Source: Vitrella brassicaformis CCMP3155 (lineage: Eukaryota > Protista > Chromerida). From it: a stretch of DNA of 64,000 nucleotides. Below the pieces are notes generated by a model. It made no database searches. It saw nothing but the letters and a program-made list of their open reading frames with translations, and was not told where the DNA came from. This document shows, one piece after another, positions 28 through 38,207 of this stretch. The translations under genes were made by a program, and so were the position numbers. The stretch is from contig CDMY01000355.1 of NCBI GenBank assembly GCA_001179505.1, forward strand, positions 1 to 64,000, written 5' to 3'. Numbering within the stretch: the first letter of the stretch is position 1; every line of letters starts with the position of its first letter.

Positions 28-3000
28 ATGTGGGAGACTAGAAGCTGCCCACCAGATCCACAGGAGACGCGAGACGAGCCGTCCAAACTCTTCAAGGACA
101 AGGAAGACATGCAAAAGTATTTCAGCAAGGTCGTCAAGAAGAAGGTACTCTTCAATCCATCGTCGTGCCCCACCTTTGATACGGCCTGGGAAGACGCTCA
201 CGGGAAGGGCTGGCCAGGCTCTGACACAGGCAGCGAGGATTCGCACTTCCATGACCCGGTGGCTCCCGCCGACCCGGTGGTTGCCGAGTTCTGTCGGATG
301 GTCTTGAAGATTGTTGCCGATGCCCAGCTTCACCGCCGAGCCCACACTCCTTGCTGCTTCAAGTATGAACGGTACAAACGGGCGGCGCAGCGCAAAGGGA
401 AATCTCGGTTCTCGTTCCCTCGAGCGCTCATTCGATGTACCTACATTGACAAGAAGACTCGCGTAATCCACATGCGTCGCCACCATCGATGGGTCAACGC
501 GTTCAATCCATTCATTGCCTACCTGCTGAAGTGCAATCACGACATTCGATACCTCGGACAATCCACTGATGCAGCATATGCTGCCGTAAGGCTGACGGCG
601 ATCACACACACACTGACAGTGAGCCTGGCATGCATTCATATGCTGGTACGCTTGCGTTGTATCTACCAGGTCCACTATTGCACCAACTACGCAGCCAAGA
701 TGGAGCTGCCAATCTCTGAGATGGTGGCTGTGATTGCTGCTGGCTTCAAGCGATATCAAGAGCGATACGGCGACGATGACAGCGATGATGTGCGAGAGCA
801 GTGCTCCAAGCTCGTCCGGTCCATTCACAACATGATCAAGTCGAAGACACAATTCTCAGCTCCCCAAGTCGCAATGATCCTTCTCGGCCTGGGCAAGAAG
901 GGAGAGAAGTATGTGTCGCACGACTTTCAGCCTCTAGTTCTTTCTTCATTCCTGGCGCACCTTGACCGCCACTTTGCTGGTGACACGCCCGCGGCTGAGC
1001 CGACACACACCGAGCAGGAGTCGTACACGATCACCCTGCAACAAAAGGGAAGAGGGCTGAGAGAGATCGTTCTGAGCAATCAAGTGGATGACTATATTCA
1101 TCGTCCCACCAGCAGAGAGCTGCAAGACGGCCGCCAGTTCCACGTAGCGCGTGTGGGAGATGAGGTCGGAGACGCCAGTAAAGTGGCGCTGCCACCGAAG
1201 CTGACGGGTTTGACGGCTTTCACCGACGTCGAGATGAAGGACGTTTATCTCTACCAGTTCATGGAGGCCTTCTTTGCAATGCGCCTGACGAAAGCGGAGA
1301 TGGACAGCGAGGAAAAGAGGGAGAAAATGAAAGAAAACGGGAAGCCGATACCAGCCAATCGGCTGGTACGCATCCAGCGATTTCGCTTCCTGCGTGCTCA
1401 CCCTCTGTGGACCACGCATCGGCTCCGCCAGCGGGCTGCCGACGACCTCCGAATCCCTCTCGTCTTCTACGACCGCATTCCGAGCAAGACGGCCGCGTCA
1501 GCAGAGGACAGAGAGAAGCACGCGAAGATTATGTTGGTCTTGTTCAAACCATGGCGATGCCCTGAGGACCTGAAGACACACGGCACATGGTGCGAGTCGT
1601 GTGCAGCGTTTGTGTCGGGCTTACCGAGTGATGATAGGCGCCACAAGCTCATGCAGAACTTCGAGGATGTCCATCGGTCAGAGGAAGACGCCAAAATCTA
1701 TCGATACCTGCGTGACAAGGAGAGCGAGCATGCCACATCACTCGCAGAAGAGACCCAGAAGTTCCTCAATGACCAATACGACCGCCTGTACGCCAAGAAC
1801 AGGGAGACTGAAGATGACGTGTTGCAGCTGCTGGGGCCCGCCTACCTGTCTGGCCTCACTGGCGGCAAGGAAACCTTCTCTCATATGGAGATCCTGGCGT
1901 CATCGCTCGCTCGACCGACGACAGAAGACAGCCCGCAGATTGCCGCTCCTACGGCGCCCGTGTTGAAGGCGTGCTTCGCTAAGTATATCAATGCATCGCT
2001 GGATGCAGTTGGGTGTGAACCTATTGATATCGAAACAGCAACAGAGGTGAGATGATGATAAGTATGAGTGCATTATGCATTGTATCAATCTAAACTGTCT
2101 GTCTCTCTGGTGCGTGCATCTCTGTGTACCTTGCATTGAAGGCGTTGTCGAAGACCTCTCTCGATGACCGTCATTCAGCATGTCAATCAAATGGAAGCCG
2201 TCAGGATCAGCTCAACGATGACCTGCAGCAGCAACGGAACAAGCTTTGTGGAATCGGCCACAGCCACGGCACGTCAGATGAAGCAAGCCTCTTGAGTAGC
2301 TTCTCCTCAAATCTCTTCACACACGGTGGTCACTCCATGGATGCTGCCGACCTCACTCGACTGCTGGCGCAGCCGGCGTCCGCATTCAAGCCGCCTGAGA
2401 CGGGCGACGACAAGAACCGTGAAGACCTCCTCTGTACAGTGGCGAGCCGTTACCAATTGAACGAAGAGCAGATGCGGGCGTTCCAAATTATCTGCAGCCA
2501 CTTGCTGAACCACTACAAAGACCTGCGGGACAACAAATACGTCACGCCATTGCGCATGTGCCTGACCGGCGAGGGCGGCACCGGCAAAACACACGTCATC
2601 AAAGCTGTGAAGGCCTATTTTGCTGAACTGCAATGCCGACATTGGCTGCGCCTGGCAGCACCTACCGGCGTGGCTGCAGATAATATCGGAGGCTCGACCC
2701 TCGATTCGCTCCTGCACATCTTCGATGACTTCGAGAGCGGCGACAGGAGGCTGCGGCGCCAAGCGGTGAAGCAGCAGACAATCGATGGTGACCGCATTTG
2801 CAGAGAGGAGCCTTGGAAGCACATCCATTACATGATAGTCGACGAGATCTCTTTCGTCAATCGCCAGAAGCTCGACAAAGTCGATGGGGCATTGAGGGAC
2901 CTGCGAAAGGCAGCGAAGAAGGACATAAGGGATGGCGATGATTCGTTTGGAGGCATGAGCATGATCCTGTGTGGCGACTTTATGCAGCTCCCACCTGTCC

Positions 3001-4268
3001 GGCCGTATGCATTGTATGACAAGCGCGATCGAGAGCATCCTCGCAGTCTCTGGCACAGCTTCGATTGCGTCATTGTCCTTCAGCACAATCACAGGATCGA
3101 GGGGGATCCGACCTTCTATGGCCTTCTGCAGCGATTGCGATGCGGGCAGCTGACTGATGACGACATCAAGCTGATTAAGAGCCGCGTGCTGAAGACCCCA
3201 AGCGATGCTCGAGGGCCTCGCATTGTGTGGCGCAATGAGGTCAGGCAACGCATCAACGCTCAGGAAGCCTTCAAGTTTGCCGCCGCGACAAACCAAGATG
3301 TGTACGTGTCACCAGCCATTGACACGTATCGGCCGAAAGGGAAGAAAGAGCAGCCTGCCCCGGCGTACATGCAGAAGATGGTCCTGGAGAAGAACGAGAG
3401 TCACACAGGCAATCTGCCGACATCACTGCTTCTCGTAAAGGGGTGGTCTTACATGCTCACGACGAATAGAGCGACGGAGAGCGGCCTTGTATGTCTATCA
3501 CCTGCACACCTACACACACACACTCACACACACACAGCACGCAATGGTGCATTCATTTCCCTCTCTTGTCTGGACACGACAGGTGAATGGTTCTCTTGGT
3601 ATCTTATATGATATCATTCTCGAGAACGACACCGCCATCACTACGGCAACACAGCTCGTCGACGGCAAGAGGCTTCGTTTGCACTATCTGAGCCGTCCTC
3701 CAGCGGAGGTCATCCTGCAGTTCGAGAACAGCCGACACACGCATCTCACGGGCCTTCCCCTCCCCCCCGCCTGTCCTCACCTGACGAAGCCCATCCGTAT
3801 ACGGCCGTCCTTCGGCATGTGGCTGAGGAAGAACGATCACGACCGAACCCGTACACAGCTCTGACACCAGCTGTGCGCTCTTTCCCTCTCAGCAAGAGCT
3901 TCCTCGGCCTCACATCAACGCCTATCAATCGGACAGTCAAACGCATTCAACTTCCTATTGTCCCTGCCTTCTGTCGCACTGTCTGGAAGGTGCAAGGCAA
4001 GACCCTCAAGGAGGTAACGGTGGATCTCAACCCTCCTCCTTACCAGACGAAGGCAACGATTCCTCTTGCCATCTATGTGGCGCTGTCAAGAGTGACGTCC
4101 CTCGAAGGCCTCCACATTGCGCGGGACTTTGATGAGAAGTGGCTGAGGCAAGAATGGCCTGACTGCCTGCGTGAAGAGCTGGCCAAGCTCAACAAGCTGC
4201 ATGAACGGACGAAGGAGAAACATCCCATCCACCCCAAGCTGGCGCGTTTCGTGTGTTCAGTCAGTTGA
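28..4268 (+). CDS. Helitron Rep-helicase (RepHel), 5'-partial, 3 introns, one frameshift
   Basis: Rep-region motifs QLHRRAHTPCCFKY, RFSFPR, HRWVNAFNP..L.CNHDI and YCTNYAAK. PIF1 motifs GEGGTGKT, APTGVAADNIGGSTL, IVDEISFV, LCGDFMQLPPV, GL|VNGSLG, TVWKVQGKTL and YVALSRV. GT-AG phase-0 introns at 586-669, 2047-2141 and 3489-3582 join the ORFs in frame. A -1 shift is needed at the C7 run 3762-3768. Confidence 0.88.
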
Positions 4269-4644: not shown

Positions 4645-5237
4645 ACCCGTGACTAAGGATTCCGACAGAGGGGGTGCTTCTTCTTGCCCTCAGCCAGCAT
4701 CACCAGTCTGAGACACCATCCTTAGTCACCCGTGACTAAGGATTTCGCACAGAGGGGGTGCTTCATCTGGATTGGGTGACTCGAAAACTCGAAGTACGAC
4801 AGCCTCACCACGGAAATTGACATGTATGCAGGGCCGAATCACCCTAGTCACGGGTGACTAAGGTGGGGGGTGCTTCATCTGGATTGGGTGATTCGAAAAC
4901 TCGAAGTACGACAGCCTCACCACGGAAATTGACATGTATGCAAGGCCGAATCACCCTACTCACGGGTGACTAAGGTGATTCGGCTGTCGTACTTTGAGTT
5001 TTCGAATCACCCAATCCAGATGAAGCACCCCCCACCTTAGTCACCCGTGACTAGGGTGATTCGGCCTTGCATACATGTCAATTTCCGTGGTGAGGCTGTC
5101 GTACTTCGAGTTTTCGAGTCGCCCAATCCAGATGAAGCACCCCCTCTGTCGAAATCCTTAGTCACTGGTGACTAAGGATGAGAGTATAAGTGGGCTGGCA
5201 GCATGAAGAACCACCCCCTCTGTCGAAATCCTTAGTC
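4645..5237. repeat. Nested tandem + inverted repeat (~590-bp imperfect palindrome) with recurring hairpin node CCTTAGTCAC-NN-GTGACTAAGG
   Basis: Nodes at 4720-4741, 4842-4863, 4954-4975, 5035-5056 and 5156-5177, with half-nodes at ~4649-4658 and 5230-5237. The segment 4982-5237 is the reverse complement of ~4651-4916. Confidence 0.95.
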
Positions 5238-17100: not shown

Positions 17101-20100
17101 TCTTGCTACCTAGGGAGTTAGGGCAATTCTAAAGAAACACAACCTTGCTTGCGCTCTTTTTGGTCACTCACTCAGTCACTCGCTATGCGTCCGTCAGCCA
17201 ACTACACACACACCAGATGGAGGCTGGTGGTGCGGTGTGTTGTGTTGTGTTGTGAGGGCACGGAGAGCTGGCTGCCGGGGCCTGATCTGGTCTGGTCTGC
17301 TCTGATCCCCGTTCCATCGTCCCTTCCTCCTTCCCTCTCTCTCTCTTGCGTGGCGTTTTTGCTGCGGTGCGGCTGGCTTGATGGACGGATGTGTGGATGG
17401 ATCCCTTGGTGAGGGGTGGAGATGCTTTGAATGACGGAGACAGACAGTCCTGCTGTGTGTGGCGAGTGAGTGATGCCTGCCTGCGTGTCTGCCTACCTAC
17501 CTGCTTGTCTGTCTCGGTGTTCTCAGCTGTGAGTGAAGTCGTGGGGGCGAAAGGGTCTGCGTAGGGGAGGGAGGGGGGGGAGGGGGAATTAATGGCATAC
17601 TGGCTGGCTGAGTGACGTCGTGTAGCCAACGGGGAGGGGTGGTGGGTCGATGGATGGATGGATGGTGGGAAAAGCGGATGGAAGAGAAGGCAATGGAGTT
17701 CATGTCATCGACCCACCTACTCTGCTCTGCCTGTCTGCCTGGCTGTGTGGCTGGCTGGCTGGCTGCATTGGTTGGTCGGTCGGTTGAGTGTTCACCTCAC
17801 TTGATGGCCGTCTGTGGCACAACTAACTACCATGATGCATATCATAGCTAGCCCTGCTGACTGAACAGAGGGGAGAGGGAGGGCCAGGCAGGGGGACGTA
17901 ACAACAGCAACACTGACTGCGCCCTCACTGCTGCCTCAGTCATGCTGCATGTGTGTGTGTGTGTGTGTGATTGTTTCTTTTGTACCCTCTTTTTACAATA
18001 ACCAGCCATCCACAATCCTCTAGCCTGGCCTGGCCTGACCCGACCGACCCACATGCCGTCCGCTGCGAGCGACACGAGTGAGTGGTTTTGCGTGCTTTCA
18101 TCAGTCCGTCAGACAGCCAGTCAGTGAAGCTAACTAACTCCTCTCGTCCCTGTCACCATCCACCCACTCATCCGGCCATTTATTCTCTCATCCAGCCTTT
18201 TACGCTATCCATTCCATTCAACCATCTCCAGCTGCCCAACTGCCTGTAGACGTGCGTCGTTTGTTAAGTGAATGACGTGACGTGTGTGAGGTGGCGGGTG
18301 CACCCACGGCTGCGCGGCAACAAGCTAGGCTGTTTTTCCATATATACCAGGTGGTGCTGGTGGGCGGGGCGGGGCGGGATGGAGGGGGAGTGTTGCGGAG
18401 CAGTCAGGCAGGCGGGCGGGCCAGCATGGGTGGTCTGAATCATGGCTTGTGTGTGTGTGTGTCCTTTGCTGTTTTATGGCGTCTTGGTTGGTTGGTGGCT
18501 GATTGGGGAAGGTAGTCGATGTGCTGCTGCGGCTGGTGCGGTGTGGGTGCTGAAGGAATGGATGGATGGATGGACCGGTGTCACACGTAAATGCGTCCAC
18601 ACGCGAACTGACCATGCTGTGTCCATGCGATGCCACGCCATGCATGCCATGCGTGAGAGCTGCGATCGATGCGAATTCGTCTCAAGGCGAGTAATGCTGC
18701 TACAAACCCATCCACCCACCCATCCATCCATCCACCCACATAAATGCGCCCACCCCGCTGCCATAGCCGGCCCATCTACACATACCTCCCTGAGATGCAT
18801 TGATGGTGGTGCTGCTGCTGCCTTTGGCCTAACTAAGCTGCTTTCTCCTTGCCTGCCTACCTGCTTCCTGATTTTACTTACATCGTCTGTCTGTCTGTCT
18901 GTCTGTGTCTCCGGTCATGCTCTGCATGGAATTTTGTTTTTTCAGGCATCCCATCCATCCATCCATCCATCGTCCGTCCAGACAGACAGACATACTTGCT
19001 CACCTCACACAGCCAGCTCAGCTCAGGACATGCTGCATGCCGTCACGACATATCAATACGGACGGAACAAGAGCCCGTACGTCGCCGACTCATCCATCCA
19101 TCCATCCATCCTTCCGTGTACTTCCCCCGGTCGGTATGTGAAGGCAAGGCAAGGATGTAAGTAATTAAGTTGCCAGCTAGCGAGGAAGTGAGATCGACCG
19201 GACGGACGATGTGGGTGGCGGTACGTTGAAGCAAGGCAATGCACACACACAGCTGACACGTCAGCACGAAGCAAGGGAGGGGCGGAATTCGGGTCGATCC
19301 ATCTCTGCAGGGCTGCGGTTTGTGGTGGAGTATTCCGTGTGGTGTGGTTTGGTGTGGTGTGGTGCGAGGGAGTTTCGGCGATAAGTGAATGGATGGATGG
19401 ATGGATCGATTAAGTGAGTGAGTGAGTGGTCTTCACTCACCCACCACCCACCATCCACCATGCTTGATTTGATTGCTTCATGCTGCCTGTCTGCCACGTT
19501 AGTCGGTGGCTCCCTCCCTGGCTGGTCAGCAAAACAGCCGTTGGTTCGTTTTTTCACACAACACCTACCTCTACCTCTACCTCTCTCACGTAGATTCTCT
19601 CTCTCTGGTTACCTGTTATGCTCATAGGTCCTACATAGTTTTCCTCCCCTTCTGCTGCAGTGTGCGTCTCACCGTGCCGTGCCCTTCAATCCTCTCACTC
19701 TCACTCTCTCTGTATTGTATGTGTGTGAACCCATCCATCTTATGCCTGCCTGCCTGCCTGCCTGTTCCCGCCATCCTTCTCTCTCTCTCTCTCTCTCTCT
19801 CTCGCCGCTATCCATGCATCTTTCCATCGTCGCTCTTATTCCGTGCCGTGCCGTGCCGTACATGCCTGCCTGCCTGCCGTGGTGTGCCGGGATGTGGGTG
19901 AATGGGACAACTTTTTGTTGTGGGTGGTGAGAGCAGCTGCCGACAAAGCTCCTTTGGTGGCGTCTCCTGAATGATTTGATTGATGCGATCCATGCGATGG
20001 GATGGACGGATGGATGCGCACGTGCGGACGGCCATGCGGTCATGTCTGTCTGTCTCGCTAACTTCCTACCTGTTCACACGCATGCACACATCGATATGTA

Positions 20101-21529: not shown

Positions 21530-22506
21530 CGAGGTAGGTGGGCTGGGCGGGGGTGAGTGGTGTGAAGGGCATTCTGGATGGATGGGTGTGATCACTGTTG
21601 TGTGTGTGTGTGTGTGTTTGCCTTAGTGCGTCGGTATTTTCGTGTGAGCATCTGGTCCGGTGTGTGTGTGTGTGTGTGCAAGGGGCTAGGTGAGTGTGCG
21701 AGGGGCTGGGTTTTGATTGACTGTCCGGCTGCCAACACTCCAGCTGATCTGATTTGATACGTACGACCGGTGCCCACGTACAACACGTTACTTGTGGGTC
21801 GTTTCGGTTGTGTTTGTACTGCGTGTGGTGTGGGGTGGTGTGGTGTGGGGTGTGTGCCGTGTGCACACAGGCAAGGGAAGGGCTGCCACGTGTCTTTGTG
21901 TGGCGGGTAGTAGCAGTAGTCTACTAGGTGATTTATAATTTGAGCGGCATCTTGGTTGGTTGATGCACGGATAAGTGTGCATACAACAGAGAGGAGGGAG
22001 GGCAGTCTGTCTGGTCTCATGGATGGATACACGGTGTCTTTGCGTGTATGTATGCTCTCAATATCAACACACTTTTACATGAGAGCATAAGAAGTACGAG
22101 AACCGGTCAGCAGCAGTCGAGCAGTACAAGTGACCGCACGGACCGACCTGGACCACGACCGACGGACAAAACACACGCAACCAACGAGTTCCACACACAT
22201 AGTTCCACCCCACACACGAACGCCTTCATCGCCATCCTTGTCGCGTTTGCTCTCAGTGCGCCGACCACACACTACAGTGCAAACCGGCGCCCCATGGACG
22301 CTTCCTTGGCCGCCATCGCGATTCTCGCCAGATCGGGAATTCGGGTGCGAGCTTAAACGGATCTTTCAGCGAGCTCGAACGGATCCACAAATCTGCCTTG
22401 CATCTCCCTCTTATCTGTTCCTTCCAGCCCCTGTCAGCGTGCATACGAACCGATTTCATCGCAGATCTATCATTCCTGGAATCCCACCAGACCAGCCAGC
22501 ACCGTG

Positions 22507-24968
22507 ATGAAGCTGCTCTCTGCCCTCTGCCTCATCGCCCTCTTGGGCACAGCACTCTGTCAGGATGCCGCGCCACCCGCAGCAGCAGAGCCTATGGCTG
22601 AGCCGATGCCCGAAGGCACCACCGAGGGGGACGTGGAAATCGACTGCGACATCGCCGAGAACGCCGTGCTCGACGAATGCCGTAGGCATGCATGGAGACA
22701 CGCACTCACACGCGCATGGGGTGCATGGGGGTGGTGCATGTGACTCACGAGGGCATGGTGTGTGTCTGTGTGTGCTGTGTCAGAGGAGGTGAGTGGGCAG
22801 GTGCCTCTCGTCGAGCCGGGAATGCCCCCGGCGGAGACTGAAGTAGTGAATGCCACAGTCGCCGGCGAAGGTGAGAAGAGACACGGGTCTGCCTCATGTG
22901 GTTTCACGTGCCCTTCATGTGGGTGTGTTGTTGTGTCCTCATCTTTCTCGTTCAGCGTTCGTGTGCATGCCGGCTGCACAGTACGGTGGATACCGCCGGT
23001 TGGGCAGGAAGAAGAACCACTACGGCGGCGGTGGCGGTGGCGGTGGCTACACGAAGACCTATCACACCAAGGGCTACGACTGCACCTACGGCGGCAAGGG
23101 CGGCGGATGCACTGGAAAAGAGTGCGGTCAGTGAGGAGGGAGTGGACATGCACATACACACAGAAAGATAGCACGGAACACATGAGCTCATCTGTGCTGT
23201 CCGGTCATGTTGTGGCTGTGCAGTCGAAGGGCCTGTCGATGGCTCATCGTCATCCTCAACCACAACCACAGAAGCACCCACTTCCGCACCCGGCAGTGTC
23301 CCCGCGGTGGCTTATGCTCCTCCTGAGGGTGCTGAAGCTGCTCCCCCTTCCAACCGACAGCTCGGCCAGAAGCACTACAGCCACGGCGGCTACTACGGCC
23401 ACGGCGGCTACTCCGGCCACGGCACGTACTACGGCCACGGGAAGCACGGCGGCTACAGCGGCCACGGCAAGTACTACAGCCACGGCAGCAAGGGCGGCTA
23501 CAAATGCGCTGACAAGACCTGCGGTCAGTGAGGAGGCAGTGGACACACAGACACAAGAGCACGGGCGACATGGGCTCTCATCTGTGCTGTCCGGTCATGC
23601 TACGCGTGTGTAGGTGAGGGTGGTGAGGGTGGTGAGGGTGGTGAGGGTGGTGACGGTGGTGACGGTGGTGACGGTGGTGTTGGTGAGCCCGGGAGTGTGC
23701 CTGAGGCTGTGCCCGCTGTGGCGGCTCCTCCAGCTGCTGCTGGTTCCACTGGTAGTGCTCCTCCCCCCACCCGACAGCTCGTGGAGTCCTGTAGCGGTAG
23801 CAGTGGCACCTCATGTGGTGAGAACAAGAAAAGACACATGCCCACCGGACACGATTACTCACCTTTTGTATCTTGTCTTGTCCGACTGCAGGTGCACGTG
23901 CTCCGGTGCCTGCAGCTGCCAATTGCGTGCCTGCTGCAGAGGGTGGAGCACTCCCACAAGGATGCGGTAAGGGAGGCAGACAAGTGGTGCATGCATCAGT
24001 CACAGCACGTGATGTCTGTCCATGTGTTTTGTGTCACTGTCATAACTCCCGCTGAAGATGAGGCATCACCTCCTGCTATGGCAGAGGCCGCACAAGCACC
24101 GGCACCGGTGGCTGCTTCTGCTCCTGCTGATGGCTCTCGACGACTGCAGACTCAGGGGGCGGCGGCGGCGTGTGCCAACGGCGTGAATCCAGATGGCACA
24201 CCGTGCGGTAAGTGAGAATCACAGACACGTGCGATCATAAGTGCAGGTGTTCATGTGTGGATGTGTATGGTGTCTTTGCGGCAGGTGCAACTGCAGCATA
24301 CGCCACCCCTCCGCAGCAAGCCATGGCAGCAACACCACAATATGCGGCGCCTGGTAAGACAGACAAGGCAACACGGAGAGAAGCTGTCCGAGCCAGCATT
24401 CACTGGCACTGGTGTGCTGTGTGCGCGCGCGTCAGGTTCCTCATGCATCCCCGGTGGCCGTCGTCTTGGCACGGGCTCGAAGGGCTACGGCTCCTCGTGC
24501 GGCTACTCGAGTGGTGGCCACGGGGGCTACTACAGCGGCGGGCACCAAAAGGCGTCATGCGTCGGCTCTGACGGAACGACTGCCGTCGACTGCAGCGGAA
24601 GTGAGCAACGAAGAATCTGCACCCCACTTATACCATCCATGGAATGCATATCCATTTCGTCTCGTGCTGTGGCTCCGTTCTCTCGCTCAGGCTATATTAC
24701 TCCAACAGATACTGCATCGGCACCCCCATCACAATCCTCCTCCGCAGCAGCCCCCGTCGCAGCACCCCCAGCCGCAAGTTCCACTGCCAGCGCCCCAACC
24801 CCACCCACTGGCGGCGGCCGCCGGTCCCTCCGTGCCGACCTGACGAGAGTGGAAGGTGATGGGACGGCGGCTGAGATGGTGGCGGCCCCTGCTGGTGCTG
24901 CGCCAGCTGCTGCTCCTGCTGCTGTGGCAGAGGCGGTCACTGAGGCCCCCGCTGAGGAGGAGCCCTGA
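22507..24968 (+). CDS. Secreted modular polyprotein with repeated RxL motifs and Gly/Tyr/His/Lys-rich Cys-capped peptides (putative cell/cyst-wall precursor), 10 exons
   Basis: Signal MKLLSALCLIALLGTALC. Exons 22507-22681, 22784-22870, 22956-23126, 23224-23523, 23614-23817, 23892-23966, 24058-24207, 24285-24353, 24436-24600 and ~24709-24968, all joined by phase-1 GT-AG introns into one open frame. Confidence 0.85.
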
Positions 24969-25181
24969 GGGCGACTGACTGGCTGACGTGACACTTGACT
25001 GACTGCTTGGCTGCGTGGATGGATGGGTGTGTGCGAGGGGGCGGGGGAGTGAGTGTGTGGCTGTGTCTGTTTTGCATACCTATCTATCTAAACTGGCTGC
25101 CTGTCTGCGTGTCACGTGTCGAGAGAGAGTTGAGTCGTGGTGATGCATGCGATGACGATGCAGATGCACAGTTCCTAGCGT

Positions 25182-25227
25182 TTTATTCCTTGGCCCCCAC
25201 ACACTTTATTCCTTGGCCCCCACACAC
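25182..25227. repeat. Perfect 23-bp tandem duplication TTTATTCCTTGGCCCCCACACAC x2
   Basis: Seen directly, ~210 bp downstream of the polyprotein stop. Confidence 0.9.
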
Positions 25228-37071: not shown

Positions 37072-37902
37072 ATGTCGAGTTGGGATGACGACGACTTCGA
37101 CGTCGACCCGGCCGGCGTCGCAACAAAGAAGATCAACGAGGAGGAGGAGGACGTCCTGGACGACTGGGAGCAGCACGACGACCAACCCACCGCACCAGCC
37201 GCACCAGCACCGCCACCGTCAGCGTCAGCGTCAGCCCAGCCAGCCAGCAACGGCACCCTCCCCGCCAAGAGCAAGCCACCAGCCAAGAAGGAGCCGGCGG
37301 AGGAGGCCTATGTCGCCCTGGACGATCCACTCGCCGAGAAACTGAGGCGGCAGAAGCTCGAAGAGCAGTCCAACGACATCTTGGCGGCCGACCTGTTCGC
37401 CGGCTGTCCCCGTCCAGATCCGTCATCAGGGAGGGGTGGGGAGGGCAACTCGACGGCAGCGTCAACCTCTGCGGCCGACGGTGTCAAGGAGAGGGGTAAG
37501 GCCACCAAAGTGGGAGGAACTGGGAAGGACAAGGGCGTGGCCAAGGACCTCTTCGACGACGTGTCCTTCAAGAGCACCAAGGACCTCGAGGCCTTCGCAG
37601 CCAAGCTGAGCGACAAGATCGTGGCCAGCCCGGTCAAGTCGGCGGGGTGGTTCCGCTTCCTGGACTTGGTGCTGCGTGACGCCCAGGGCAAGCTGGACGC
37701 CAAGGACTGCAAGAAGCTGATATCGAAGCTCAACGAGTACATCTCGCTCAAGGAGACGGCCAAGCGGCAGGCCGAGGACGCCAAGAAGAAGCCCAACAAG
37801 GTCAAGATGGACGCCAAGGACGAGATGGACATCATGTATGGCGAGGGTGCCGAGGAGGAGTACGAGGAGGACGATGAGGAGTACTACAAGGACTTTATGT
37901 AG
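37072..37902 (+). CDS. EIF3J: Eukaryotic translation initiation factor 3 subunit J (single exon)
   Basis: MSSWDDDDF...DVLDDWE...LDDPLAEKLRRQKLEEQS...AADLFAG, and a C-terminal acidic tail ending ...YYKDFM*. Confidence 0.9.
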   Translation: MSSWDDDDFDVDPAGVATKKINEEEEDVLDDWEQHDDQPTAPAAPAPPPSASASAQPASNGTLPAKSKPPAKKEPAEEAYVALDDPLAEKLRRQKLEEQSNDILAADLFAGCPRPDPSSGRGGEGNSTAASTSAADGVKERGKATKVGGTGKDKGVAKDLFDDVSFKSTKDLEAFAAKLSDKIVASPVKSAGWFRFLDLVLRDAQGKLDAKDCKKLISKLNEYISLKETAKRQAEDAKKKPNKVKMDAKDEMDIMYGEGAEEEYEEDDEEYYKDFM

Positions 37903-38207
37903 GGCGGGAGGGGGACTGGGCACCACCCAACCAAATCCATCCGGTGAGCGAGCAGGCAGACACAAGGCAAGGCGGGGAGGGGAAGCGTCGTGTGCATGGC
38001 ATGTTGGGTTGGGTGTGGTGGTGGTGTTTGTGTGTCAGGTTTTCCTCTCGTAACAGCTTGATTTGCTAGTGGGACGTGTCGGCCATCCTTCCACGTATCC
38101 ATCCATCCATTCAGCTATCGCTCTCGTGCCTTTCTTGTCTACCTACCTCCCCTGACAGCTGTACAGGCGTCGATCTTGCTTTTTCAACCAATCTGCACCG
38201 TGCGCCA

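Follow-up and report, generated by a model that had tools for sequence, protein, structure and literature searches.

A modular gene of Vitrella brassicaformis for a predicted secreted pro-protein with R-x-L motifs at its segment junctions

Does a free-living alga related to the apicomplexan parasites encode a secreted precursor protein that is laid out for cleavage at R-x-L motifs, and what would such a precursor release? The question is raised by a gene on the forward strand (positions 22507 to 24968) of a 64,000-nucleotide stretch of DNA from Vitrella brassicaformis CCMP3155 (contig CDMY01000355.1), which is referred to as the window throughout. An earlier reading of this DNA had described the product as a secreted polyprotein that is punctuated by six R-x-L motifs and releases short Gly/Tyr/His-rich, Cys-capped peptides, and had proposed it as a candidate wall-building system. 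Judged from its sequence, the locus is a real gene for a predicted secreted, disordered and modular pro-protein. The signal peptide, the modular exons and the non-random occurrence of R-x-L at the junctions between spacers and segments are the established part of this result.

Translation of the three forward frames, with exons linked across GT...AG boundaries, gave a single consistent gene model. An in-frame stop lies 51 codons upstream of the start ATG at 22507, which is the first ATG behind it; the stop codon lies at 24966-24968, and the coding sequence of 1674 nucleotides corresponds to 557 residues. The introns measure 74-102 nucleotides and are canonical GT-AG introns in nine of nine cases. 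All nine are also in phase 1, an outcome with a chance of at most 3e-4 even were 40% of introns phase 1, and a Cys codon directly precedes six of them (binomial P=1.6e-7). Every exon is symmetric (phase 1-1), so that the frame survives the loss of any one; therefore any exon is skippable without a frame break and modular isoforms are conceivable. Exons 6 and 8, which are placed by frame and splice signals alone, could be skipped in this way. The introns (22682-24690) are AC/AG-rich in their 5' halves and GT-rich in their 3' halves, and none of the nine folds back on itself better than dinucleotide shuffles (z -0.9 to +0.8).

Support for transcription comes from 31-nucleotide words sampled from positions 22300-25200. 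Their shares are 0.60 and 0.57 in two small data sets that are probably RNA, and 0.99 in DNA-like runs. For a fully spliced mRNA the computed share is 0.48-0.63, depending on the length of the untranslated regions (UTRs). The shares of 0.57-0.60 thus fit a spliced mRNA and support splicing and expression indirectly.

Residues 1-18 are the sole hydrophobic stretch of the protein, with Ala at position -3 and Cys at -1, and were called as a signal peptide by inspection by eye and a Kyte-Doolittle scan. The proposed order of a signal peptide followed by alternating spacers and R-x-L motifs is borne out and is non-random. Two other destinations were considered and ruled out: a plastid-targeting leader by the strongly acidic stretch that follows the signal peptide, and a membrane or glycosylphosphatidylinositol anchor by the lack of a second hydrophobic segment and the acidic C-terminus. 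The mature protein has an isoelectric point (pI) of 4.8 and consists of 18% Gly and 18% Ala, with 56 Pro, 15 Lys, 18 Cys and only 14 Arg and 10 Leu. The Lys residues are almost confined to the segments that follow the R-x-L motifs, here called heads, where they are scattered among Gly and Tyr. An AlphaFold2 model of exon 4 had no secondary structure (predicted local distance difference test 55, predicted template modelling score 0.11); being a single-sequence model it is a weak test, and on it exon 4 is predicted to be disordered.

All six R-x-L motifs named in the sequence-only reading are present: YRRLG (R101), NRQLG (R189), TRQLV (R298), SRRLQ (R365), GRRLG (R419) and RRSLR (R510). By composition 0.26 occurrences are expected, and a count of six was reached in none of 200,000 shuffles of the protein. 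Six of the 10 Leu residues in the mature protein stand two residues after an Arg, and among all gapped residue pairs none is more enriched than this one (23-fold). R-x-L is non-random at every spacer/segment junction. The sites occur in two contexts, GG-x-RRL and PP-x-x-RQL. The 30 residues upstream of sites 1-4 carry a net charge of -2 to -4, whereas those upstream of sites 5-6 are about neutral; 14-16 of the 30 are Ala or Pro except at site 1, which has nine. The sequence behind sites 1, 2 and 5 has a net charge of +2 to +4 and 17-24 Gly, Tyr or His per 30 residues.

The architecture of the gene indicates how these junctions multiplied. Introns 3 and 4 are alike over their 5' ends (about 22 nucleotides) and their 3' halves, and therefore show a tandem duplication of the units formed by exon 3 and exon 4, each with its intron. 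Exons 3 and 9 have a common four-Cys plan, C-[MI]-P...G-x-RRL-G. The spacers before the two RQL sites, in exons 4 and 5, are 61% identical, whereas the sequences after these sites are unrelated. Taken together, the intron likeness, the shared exon plan and the spacer identity indicate that the gene grew by duplicating one-exon modules. The retention of R-x-L in two contexts, and behind homologous RQL spacers that lead into unrelated heads, fits selection on the junction itself. Exon 5 also holds a Gly/acidic triplet repeat that is visible in the DNA at 23645-23686.

Cuts after all R-x-L motifs would yield seven pieces: an acidic N-terminal fragment F0, five units F1-F5 that each consist of a head plus a tail, and an acidic C-terminal fragment F6. 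F0 (residues 19-103), formed by the pro-region and the RRL that closes it, has a net charge of -15 and a pI of 4.1; its Cys residues are a C-x10-C pair and the lone Cys91, and it has one NAT sequon. A segment ended by a Cys pair follows five of the six motifs and is Gly/Tyr-rich in three cases (exons 3, 4 and 9), much as had been reported. Head 1 has three Cys (C-x8-C-x4-C) and five Tyr, and its end coincides with the exon end. Head 2 contains 17 Gly, 10 Tyr, eight His and six Lys, so that the earlier count of 10 Tyr and eight His in 53 residues is exact; its sequence is built of GHG-type tandem repeats of six and 15 residues. No R-x-L precedes the Cys pairs of exons 1 and 6. The features are listed in Table 1.

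Table 1. Features of the R-x-L gene in window coordinates; residue numbers refer to the 557-residue product.
Feature	Position (strand)	Description
Whole gene	22507..24968 (+)	10 exons and 9 phase-1 GT-AG introns; predicted secreted low-complexity protein of 557 residues
Exon 1	22507..22681 (+)	
Signal peptide, residues 1-18	22507..22560 (+)	Kyte-Doolittle hydropathy scan; -3/-1 rule by eye
Acidic pro-region	22561..22993 (+)	Rest of exon 1, exon 2 and start of exon 3; introns 1-2 inside
Exon 2	22784..22870 (+)	
Exon 3	22956..23126 (+)	
R-x-L site 1	22994..23002 (+)	RRL; context GGY-RRL-G
Head 1	23003..23125 (+)	Exon 3; 41 residues, Gly/Tyr/Lys-rich, pI 9.3
Intron 3	23127..23223 (+)	Both ends homologous to intron 4 (23524-23613)
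Exon 4	23224..23523 (+)	
Exon-4 spacer	23224..23354 (+)	Ser/Thr run, then Ala/Pro-rich acidic stretch
R-x-L site 2	23355..23363 (+)	RQL; context PPSN-RQL-GQ; fits RxLxQ
Head 2	23364..23522 (+)	Exon 4; 53 residues, closed by C-x4-C, pI 9.3
Exon 5	23614..23817 (+)	Gly/acidic triplet repeat, Ala/Pro spacer, site 3, 12-residue head closed by C-x7-C
R-x-L site 3	23772..23780 (+)	Exon 5; RQL; fits RxLxE
Exon 6	23892..23966 (+)	Ala/Pro-rich module with C-x12-C, without R-x-L
Exon 7	24058..24207 (+)	Acidic Ala/Pro spacer, site 4, 20-residue head closed by C-x10-C
R-x-L site 4	24138..24146 (+)	Exon 7; RRL
Exon 8	24285..24353 (+)	23-residue Ala/Thr/Pro/Gln linker, 2 Tyr
Exon 9	24436..24600 (+)	Four-Cys module: Cys414, site 5, Gly/Tyr/Ser/His head with 3 Cys
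R-x-L site 5	24459..24467 (+)	Exon 9; RRL
Exon 10	24691..24968 (+)	Ser/Ala/Pro spacer, site 6, 45-residue acidic Ala/Pro tail without Cys, stop
R-x-L site 6	24822..24830 (+)	Exon 10; RSL, in GGGRRSLR

The order of a signal peptide, an acidic pro-region and R-x-L at the junctions is that of precursors which are cleaved into fragments. Cleavage after the Leu of R-x-L in the secretory pathway is the best reading of the motif, and we consider it likely. After entry into the endoplasmic reticulum (ER), a secretory-pathway endoprotease would cut behind this Leu, as in the silaffin, silacidin and cingulin precursors; the obvious candidate for the protease is an aspartyl protease of the plasmepsin V/ASP5 type. 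The cut would take off the 85-residue acidic pro-piece and separate units that each combine a basic Gly/Tyr/His/Lys head, carrying a small disulfide loop, with an acidic and probably O-glycosylated Ala/Pro/Ser/Thr tail. By the parity of their Cys residues, the pairs F0/F1 and F4/F5 would either stay disulfide-linked or expose a free thiol. The tails may then be trimmed, comparable to the RRIL and RRNL ends of the silaffins. Finally, the heads could serve as structural or adhesive material of a thick cell or sporangium wall or of an extracellular matrix, held by Tyr cross-links, His-metal or His-Tyr contacts, disulfides and the charge pairing of heads with tails. Such a structural, wall or matrix role is the best reading of the products and a speculative one. 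The two parts combined, an R-x-L-cleaved precursor with structural wall or matrix heads, are held tentatively and with rather more doubt than confidence.

Several observations weigh against this combined reading. No motif is found beyond the Cys pairs, and the far side of the loops is unmarked, so that R-x-L cleavage alone would keep the heads on acidic or Ala/Pro/Ser/Thr tails of 33-68 residues. F0, F1, F4 and F5 contain three Cys each because exons 3 and 9 have an extra Cys upstream of their RRL, and these residues may keep the pieces tethered after cutting. Full intramolecular pairing of the 18 Cys of the mature protein would require at least one disulfide to bridge sites 1 and 5; without such pairing, thiols would be left free for intermolecular cross-linking. 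Of the claim that short Cys-capped peptides are released, the R-x-L layout is borne out; the release itself would need a second processing step and is complicated by the three-Cys fragments. Heads 3 and 4 (exons 5 and 7) are short and slightly acidic and have neither Tyr nor His. The protein contains no KxxK, and Vitrella, a chromerid alveolate, is not known to produce silica. The wall role itself is read from composition alone, by analogy with Tyr-rich oocyst-wall peptides and squid-beak repeats.

The last of these points concerns relatives. Homology searches were run exon by exon, with exon 5 represented from 23688 on, and the joined protein was used for local counts and shuffles. A Pfam search with seven exon pieces gave nothing beyond a noise match (E=0.69); searches of the ESM Atlas and of the PDB gave no match. 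Exon 4 found none among 1.84 billion representative proteins by exhaustive phmmer, and exons 9-10 (region 75-250 of a 250-residue stretch free of stops) found none by word index. On metagenome contigs, 598 pattern matches to exon 4 were obtained and none was confirmed. An exact 30-mer of exon 1 gave no match, nor did look-ups of two small antisense open reading frames (ORFs) in and beyond the 3' end. Applying tblastn with all exon peptides to the remaining 61 kb of the window returned poly-Gly noise and no paralogue. By these searches of proteins, metagenome contigs and the window, which found neither an orthologue nor a paralogue, the gene is an orphan. For a single gene that has no paralogue in the window, the term wall-building system is an overstatement. 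At the size of the phmmer database a self-match of exon 4 would score E=1e-56, and the product of the gene is therefore absent from that library, unlike neighbouring genes of the same NCBI record, which are present. In the public record the gene probably either lacks an annotation or has a different model.

The closest parallels in layout are the diatom biosilica precursors. Sil1p, the silacidins, the cingulins and Sin1 have a signal peptide, an acidic domain and units ended by RXL (PMC4557024, PMC5525289), and in silaffins RRIL and RRNL ends are trimmed off (PMC4557024). In diatoms, RXL is the presumed recognition site of an endopeptidase that is still unknown (PMC5525289). The Vitrella protein shares with these precursors the signal peptide, the acidic N-terminal domain ending in RXL and the several units fenced by RXL or RRxL, as well as disorder, low complexity, basic products and the lack of sequence conservation between species (PMC4557024, PMC5525289). 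It differs from them in having no KxxK clusters of Lys, in heads that are Gly/Tyr/His-rich and carry disulfide loops, and in long acidic Ala/Pro/Ser/Thr spacers between units, with one module per exon; no homology was detected by phmmer with exon 4. Another secreted repeat protein is Siliplant1 (Slp1) of sorghum, which is disordered, has zwitterionic units as well as His-rich and Tyr-rich sub-domains, and ends some of its repeats with RXL (bioRxiv 10.1101/518332). Slp1 is however Pro/Lys-rich, with a pI of 9.3 against 4.8 for the mature Vitrella protein, has no Cys loops and shows no sequence similarity.

For the composition of the heads, parallels come from structural proteins of other origin. 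Eimeria GAM56 and GAM82 are precursors from which Tyr-rich peptides are thought to be cut and then dityrosine cross-linked in the coccidian oocyst wall (PMC3770453). As in the Vitrella protein, where head 2 has 10 Tyr in 53 residues and head 1 has five in 41, the precursor is secreted and disordered with a Tyr-rich domain. On the other hand, serine-protease inhibitors block the processing of GAM56, for which no R-x-L rule is known, no sequence similarity was detected (phmmer with exon 4, Pfam), and His and Gly are much higher in the Vitrella protein. In the histidine-rich proteins of the squid beak, Gly/His/Tyr repeats phase-separate via His-Tyr contacts before hardening (PMC6884462). Head 2 resembles their pentapeptide-type repeats with GHGGY, GHGTY and GHGKY, a likeness of composition only; the squid proteins are of animal origin and have neither R-x-L fences nor Cys loops.

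With regard to the protease, the apicomplexan export pathway offers the nearest comparison. V. brassicaformis is photosynthetic and the closest free-living relative of Apicomplexa (PMC4501334). In the parasites, ASP5 (of Toxoplasma) cuts RRLxx and plasmepsin V cuts RxLxE/Q/D, and ASP5 also cuts internal and C-terminal sites (PMC4764566). Like the PEXEL/TEXEL substrates, the Vitrella protein has predicted ER entry and sites that fit these consensus sequences: RRL at three sites agrees with the ASP5 consensus, and RQLGQ and RQLVE agree with that of plasmepsin V. Five of the six sites thus fit one or the other, and site 6 (RSLRA) fits neither. In contrast to PEXEL substrates, there are six sites per protein, the first R-x-L ends 85 residues after the predicted signal cleavage rather than near it, and the alga has no host cell as a target of export. 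Within the 64-kb window there is no gene for a clade-D aspartyl protease of the plasmepsin V/ASP5 type, and our literature search found no paper on R-x-L processing in chromerids or on a chromerid plasmepsin V/ASP5 orthologue. A more far-reaching proposal would make R-x-L the code of such a protease in a free-living chromerid, and the present protein one of its ancestral substrates. PEXEL/TEXEL and the diatom RXL would then descend from, or converge on, an old maturation pathway for matrix or wall peptides, with the disulfide loops at the exon ends stopping exopeptidase trimming and so setting the C-termini of the peptides. As a whole, this proposal is unlikely.

How do other explanations of the same gene compare? 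The product might be a structural glycoprotein that is never cut, a hybrid of Gly-rich and Ala/Pro-rich parts similar to plant glycine-rich proteins, arabinogalactan proteins or algal hydroxyproline-rich proteins. The chain would work whole, and R-x-L would serve in sorting, in the docking of a modifying enzyme, or be a remnant of module duplication. The persistence of the tails after any R-x-L cut and the unmarked far side of the heads agree with this explanation, as do the 18 Cys of the mature protein, which together with the three-Cys fragments favour a disulfide-held chain or network. The 20 AP, 16 PA and 12 PP dipeptides and the Ser/Thr runs are those of O-glycosylated wall proteins, and since the modules were duplicated, some copies of the motif are inherited and not independent. 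Against it stand an R-x-L that is kept where the heads are unrelated and in two different contexts, and a motif that takes up six of the 10 Leu residues of a Leu-poor protein; furthermore, cleavage at RXL is well established for diatoms (PMC4557024). An uncut glycoprotein therefore has a small but real chance of being the correct account.

Alternatively, the gene might encode a polyprotein of defence or metal-handling peptides, whose cationic Gly/His/Tyr-rich pieces, protected by acidic pro-pieces like those of many antimicrobial-peptide precursors, would target microbes around the alga or bind Zn, Cu or Ni and have no part in building a wall. Gly/His-rich antimicrobial peptides occur in plants and insects, among them the shepherins, holotricin-3 and tenecin-3. 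The pI of 9.3 of heads 1 and 2, each of which stands behind an acidic spacer, and the eight His within 53 residues are in line with such a function. Of the five heads, however, no more than two or three are cationic, the long acidic tails persist without a second cut, and no similarity to any protein, antimicrobial or other, was found in the libraries searched. We regard a defence or metal-handling role as rather unlikely.

A different reading of the cleavage signal itself is that kexin- or furin-type proteases cut after the dibasic RR in place of R-x-L. RR is present in four of the six sites, and GRKK follows site 1. Yet two sites are RQL with a single Arg, the Leu at +2 of the first or only Arg in six of six sites goes beyond a dibasic rule, and other Lys/Arg pairs lie inside a head, for example KK at residues 106-107, which makes this signal very improbable. 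Finally, that there is no real gene, or a wrong model of chance open frames in GC-rich low-complexity DNA, is scarcely credible: the product is absent from protein collections despite the strong self-match expected, and the GC content at third codon positions is 0.61 versus 0.84 in the neighbouring eIF3j gene, but nine consecutive introns of typical size hold one 557-codon frame that starts with a signal peptide, their common phase and preceding Cys codons are far from chance, and 57-60% of the sampled words in the two probable RNA sets are what a spliced gene would give, as against 99% in DNA-like runs.

Three other loci of the window were noted. A PIF1-like helicase ORF at 2124-3608 (+) (Pfam PF05970, E=9e-24) fits a Helitron adjoining the palindrome at 4645-5237. 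An ATG-initiated ORF of 240 residues at 18442-19161 (+) is unspliced in transcript-type contigs (Logan SRR646408, JGI 3300017148), and among the matches listed there was no NCBI gene with exactly this product. The gene for eIF3 subunit J at 37072-37899 (+) has a single exon (PF08597); a transcript contig of it (L002) skips 37946-38034, which suggests a 3'-UTR intron or read-through into the next gene. Two JGI data sets have short contigs of this alga, and one of the two misses a 90-nucleotide stretch of the genome, indicating that they are transcript assemblies.

The Gly/Tyr/His heads may be components of the very resistant wall of Vitrella, of whose protein make-up we know no description. Apart from what it may say about RXL, the locus is a single low-complexity orphan gene. 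A free-living relative of the Apicomplexa whose secreted precursors are punctuated by RRL and RxLxQ/E would offer natural substrates for the study of RXL proteases, and the gene bears on the origin of the PEXEL/TEXEL pathway and on the role that plasmepsin V/ASP5 had before parasitism.

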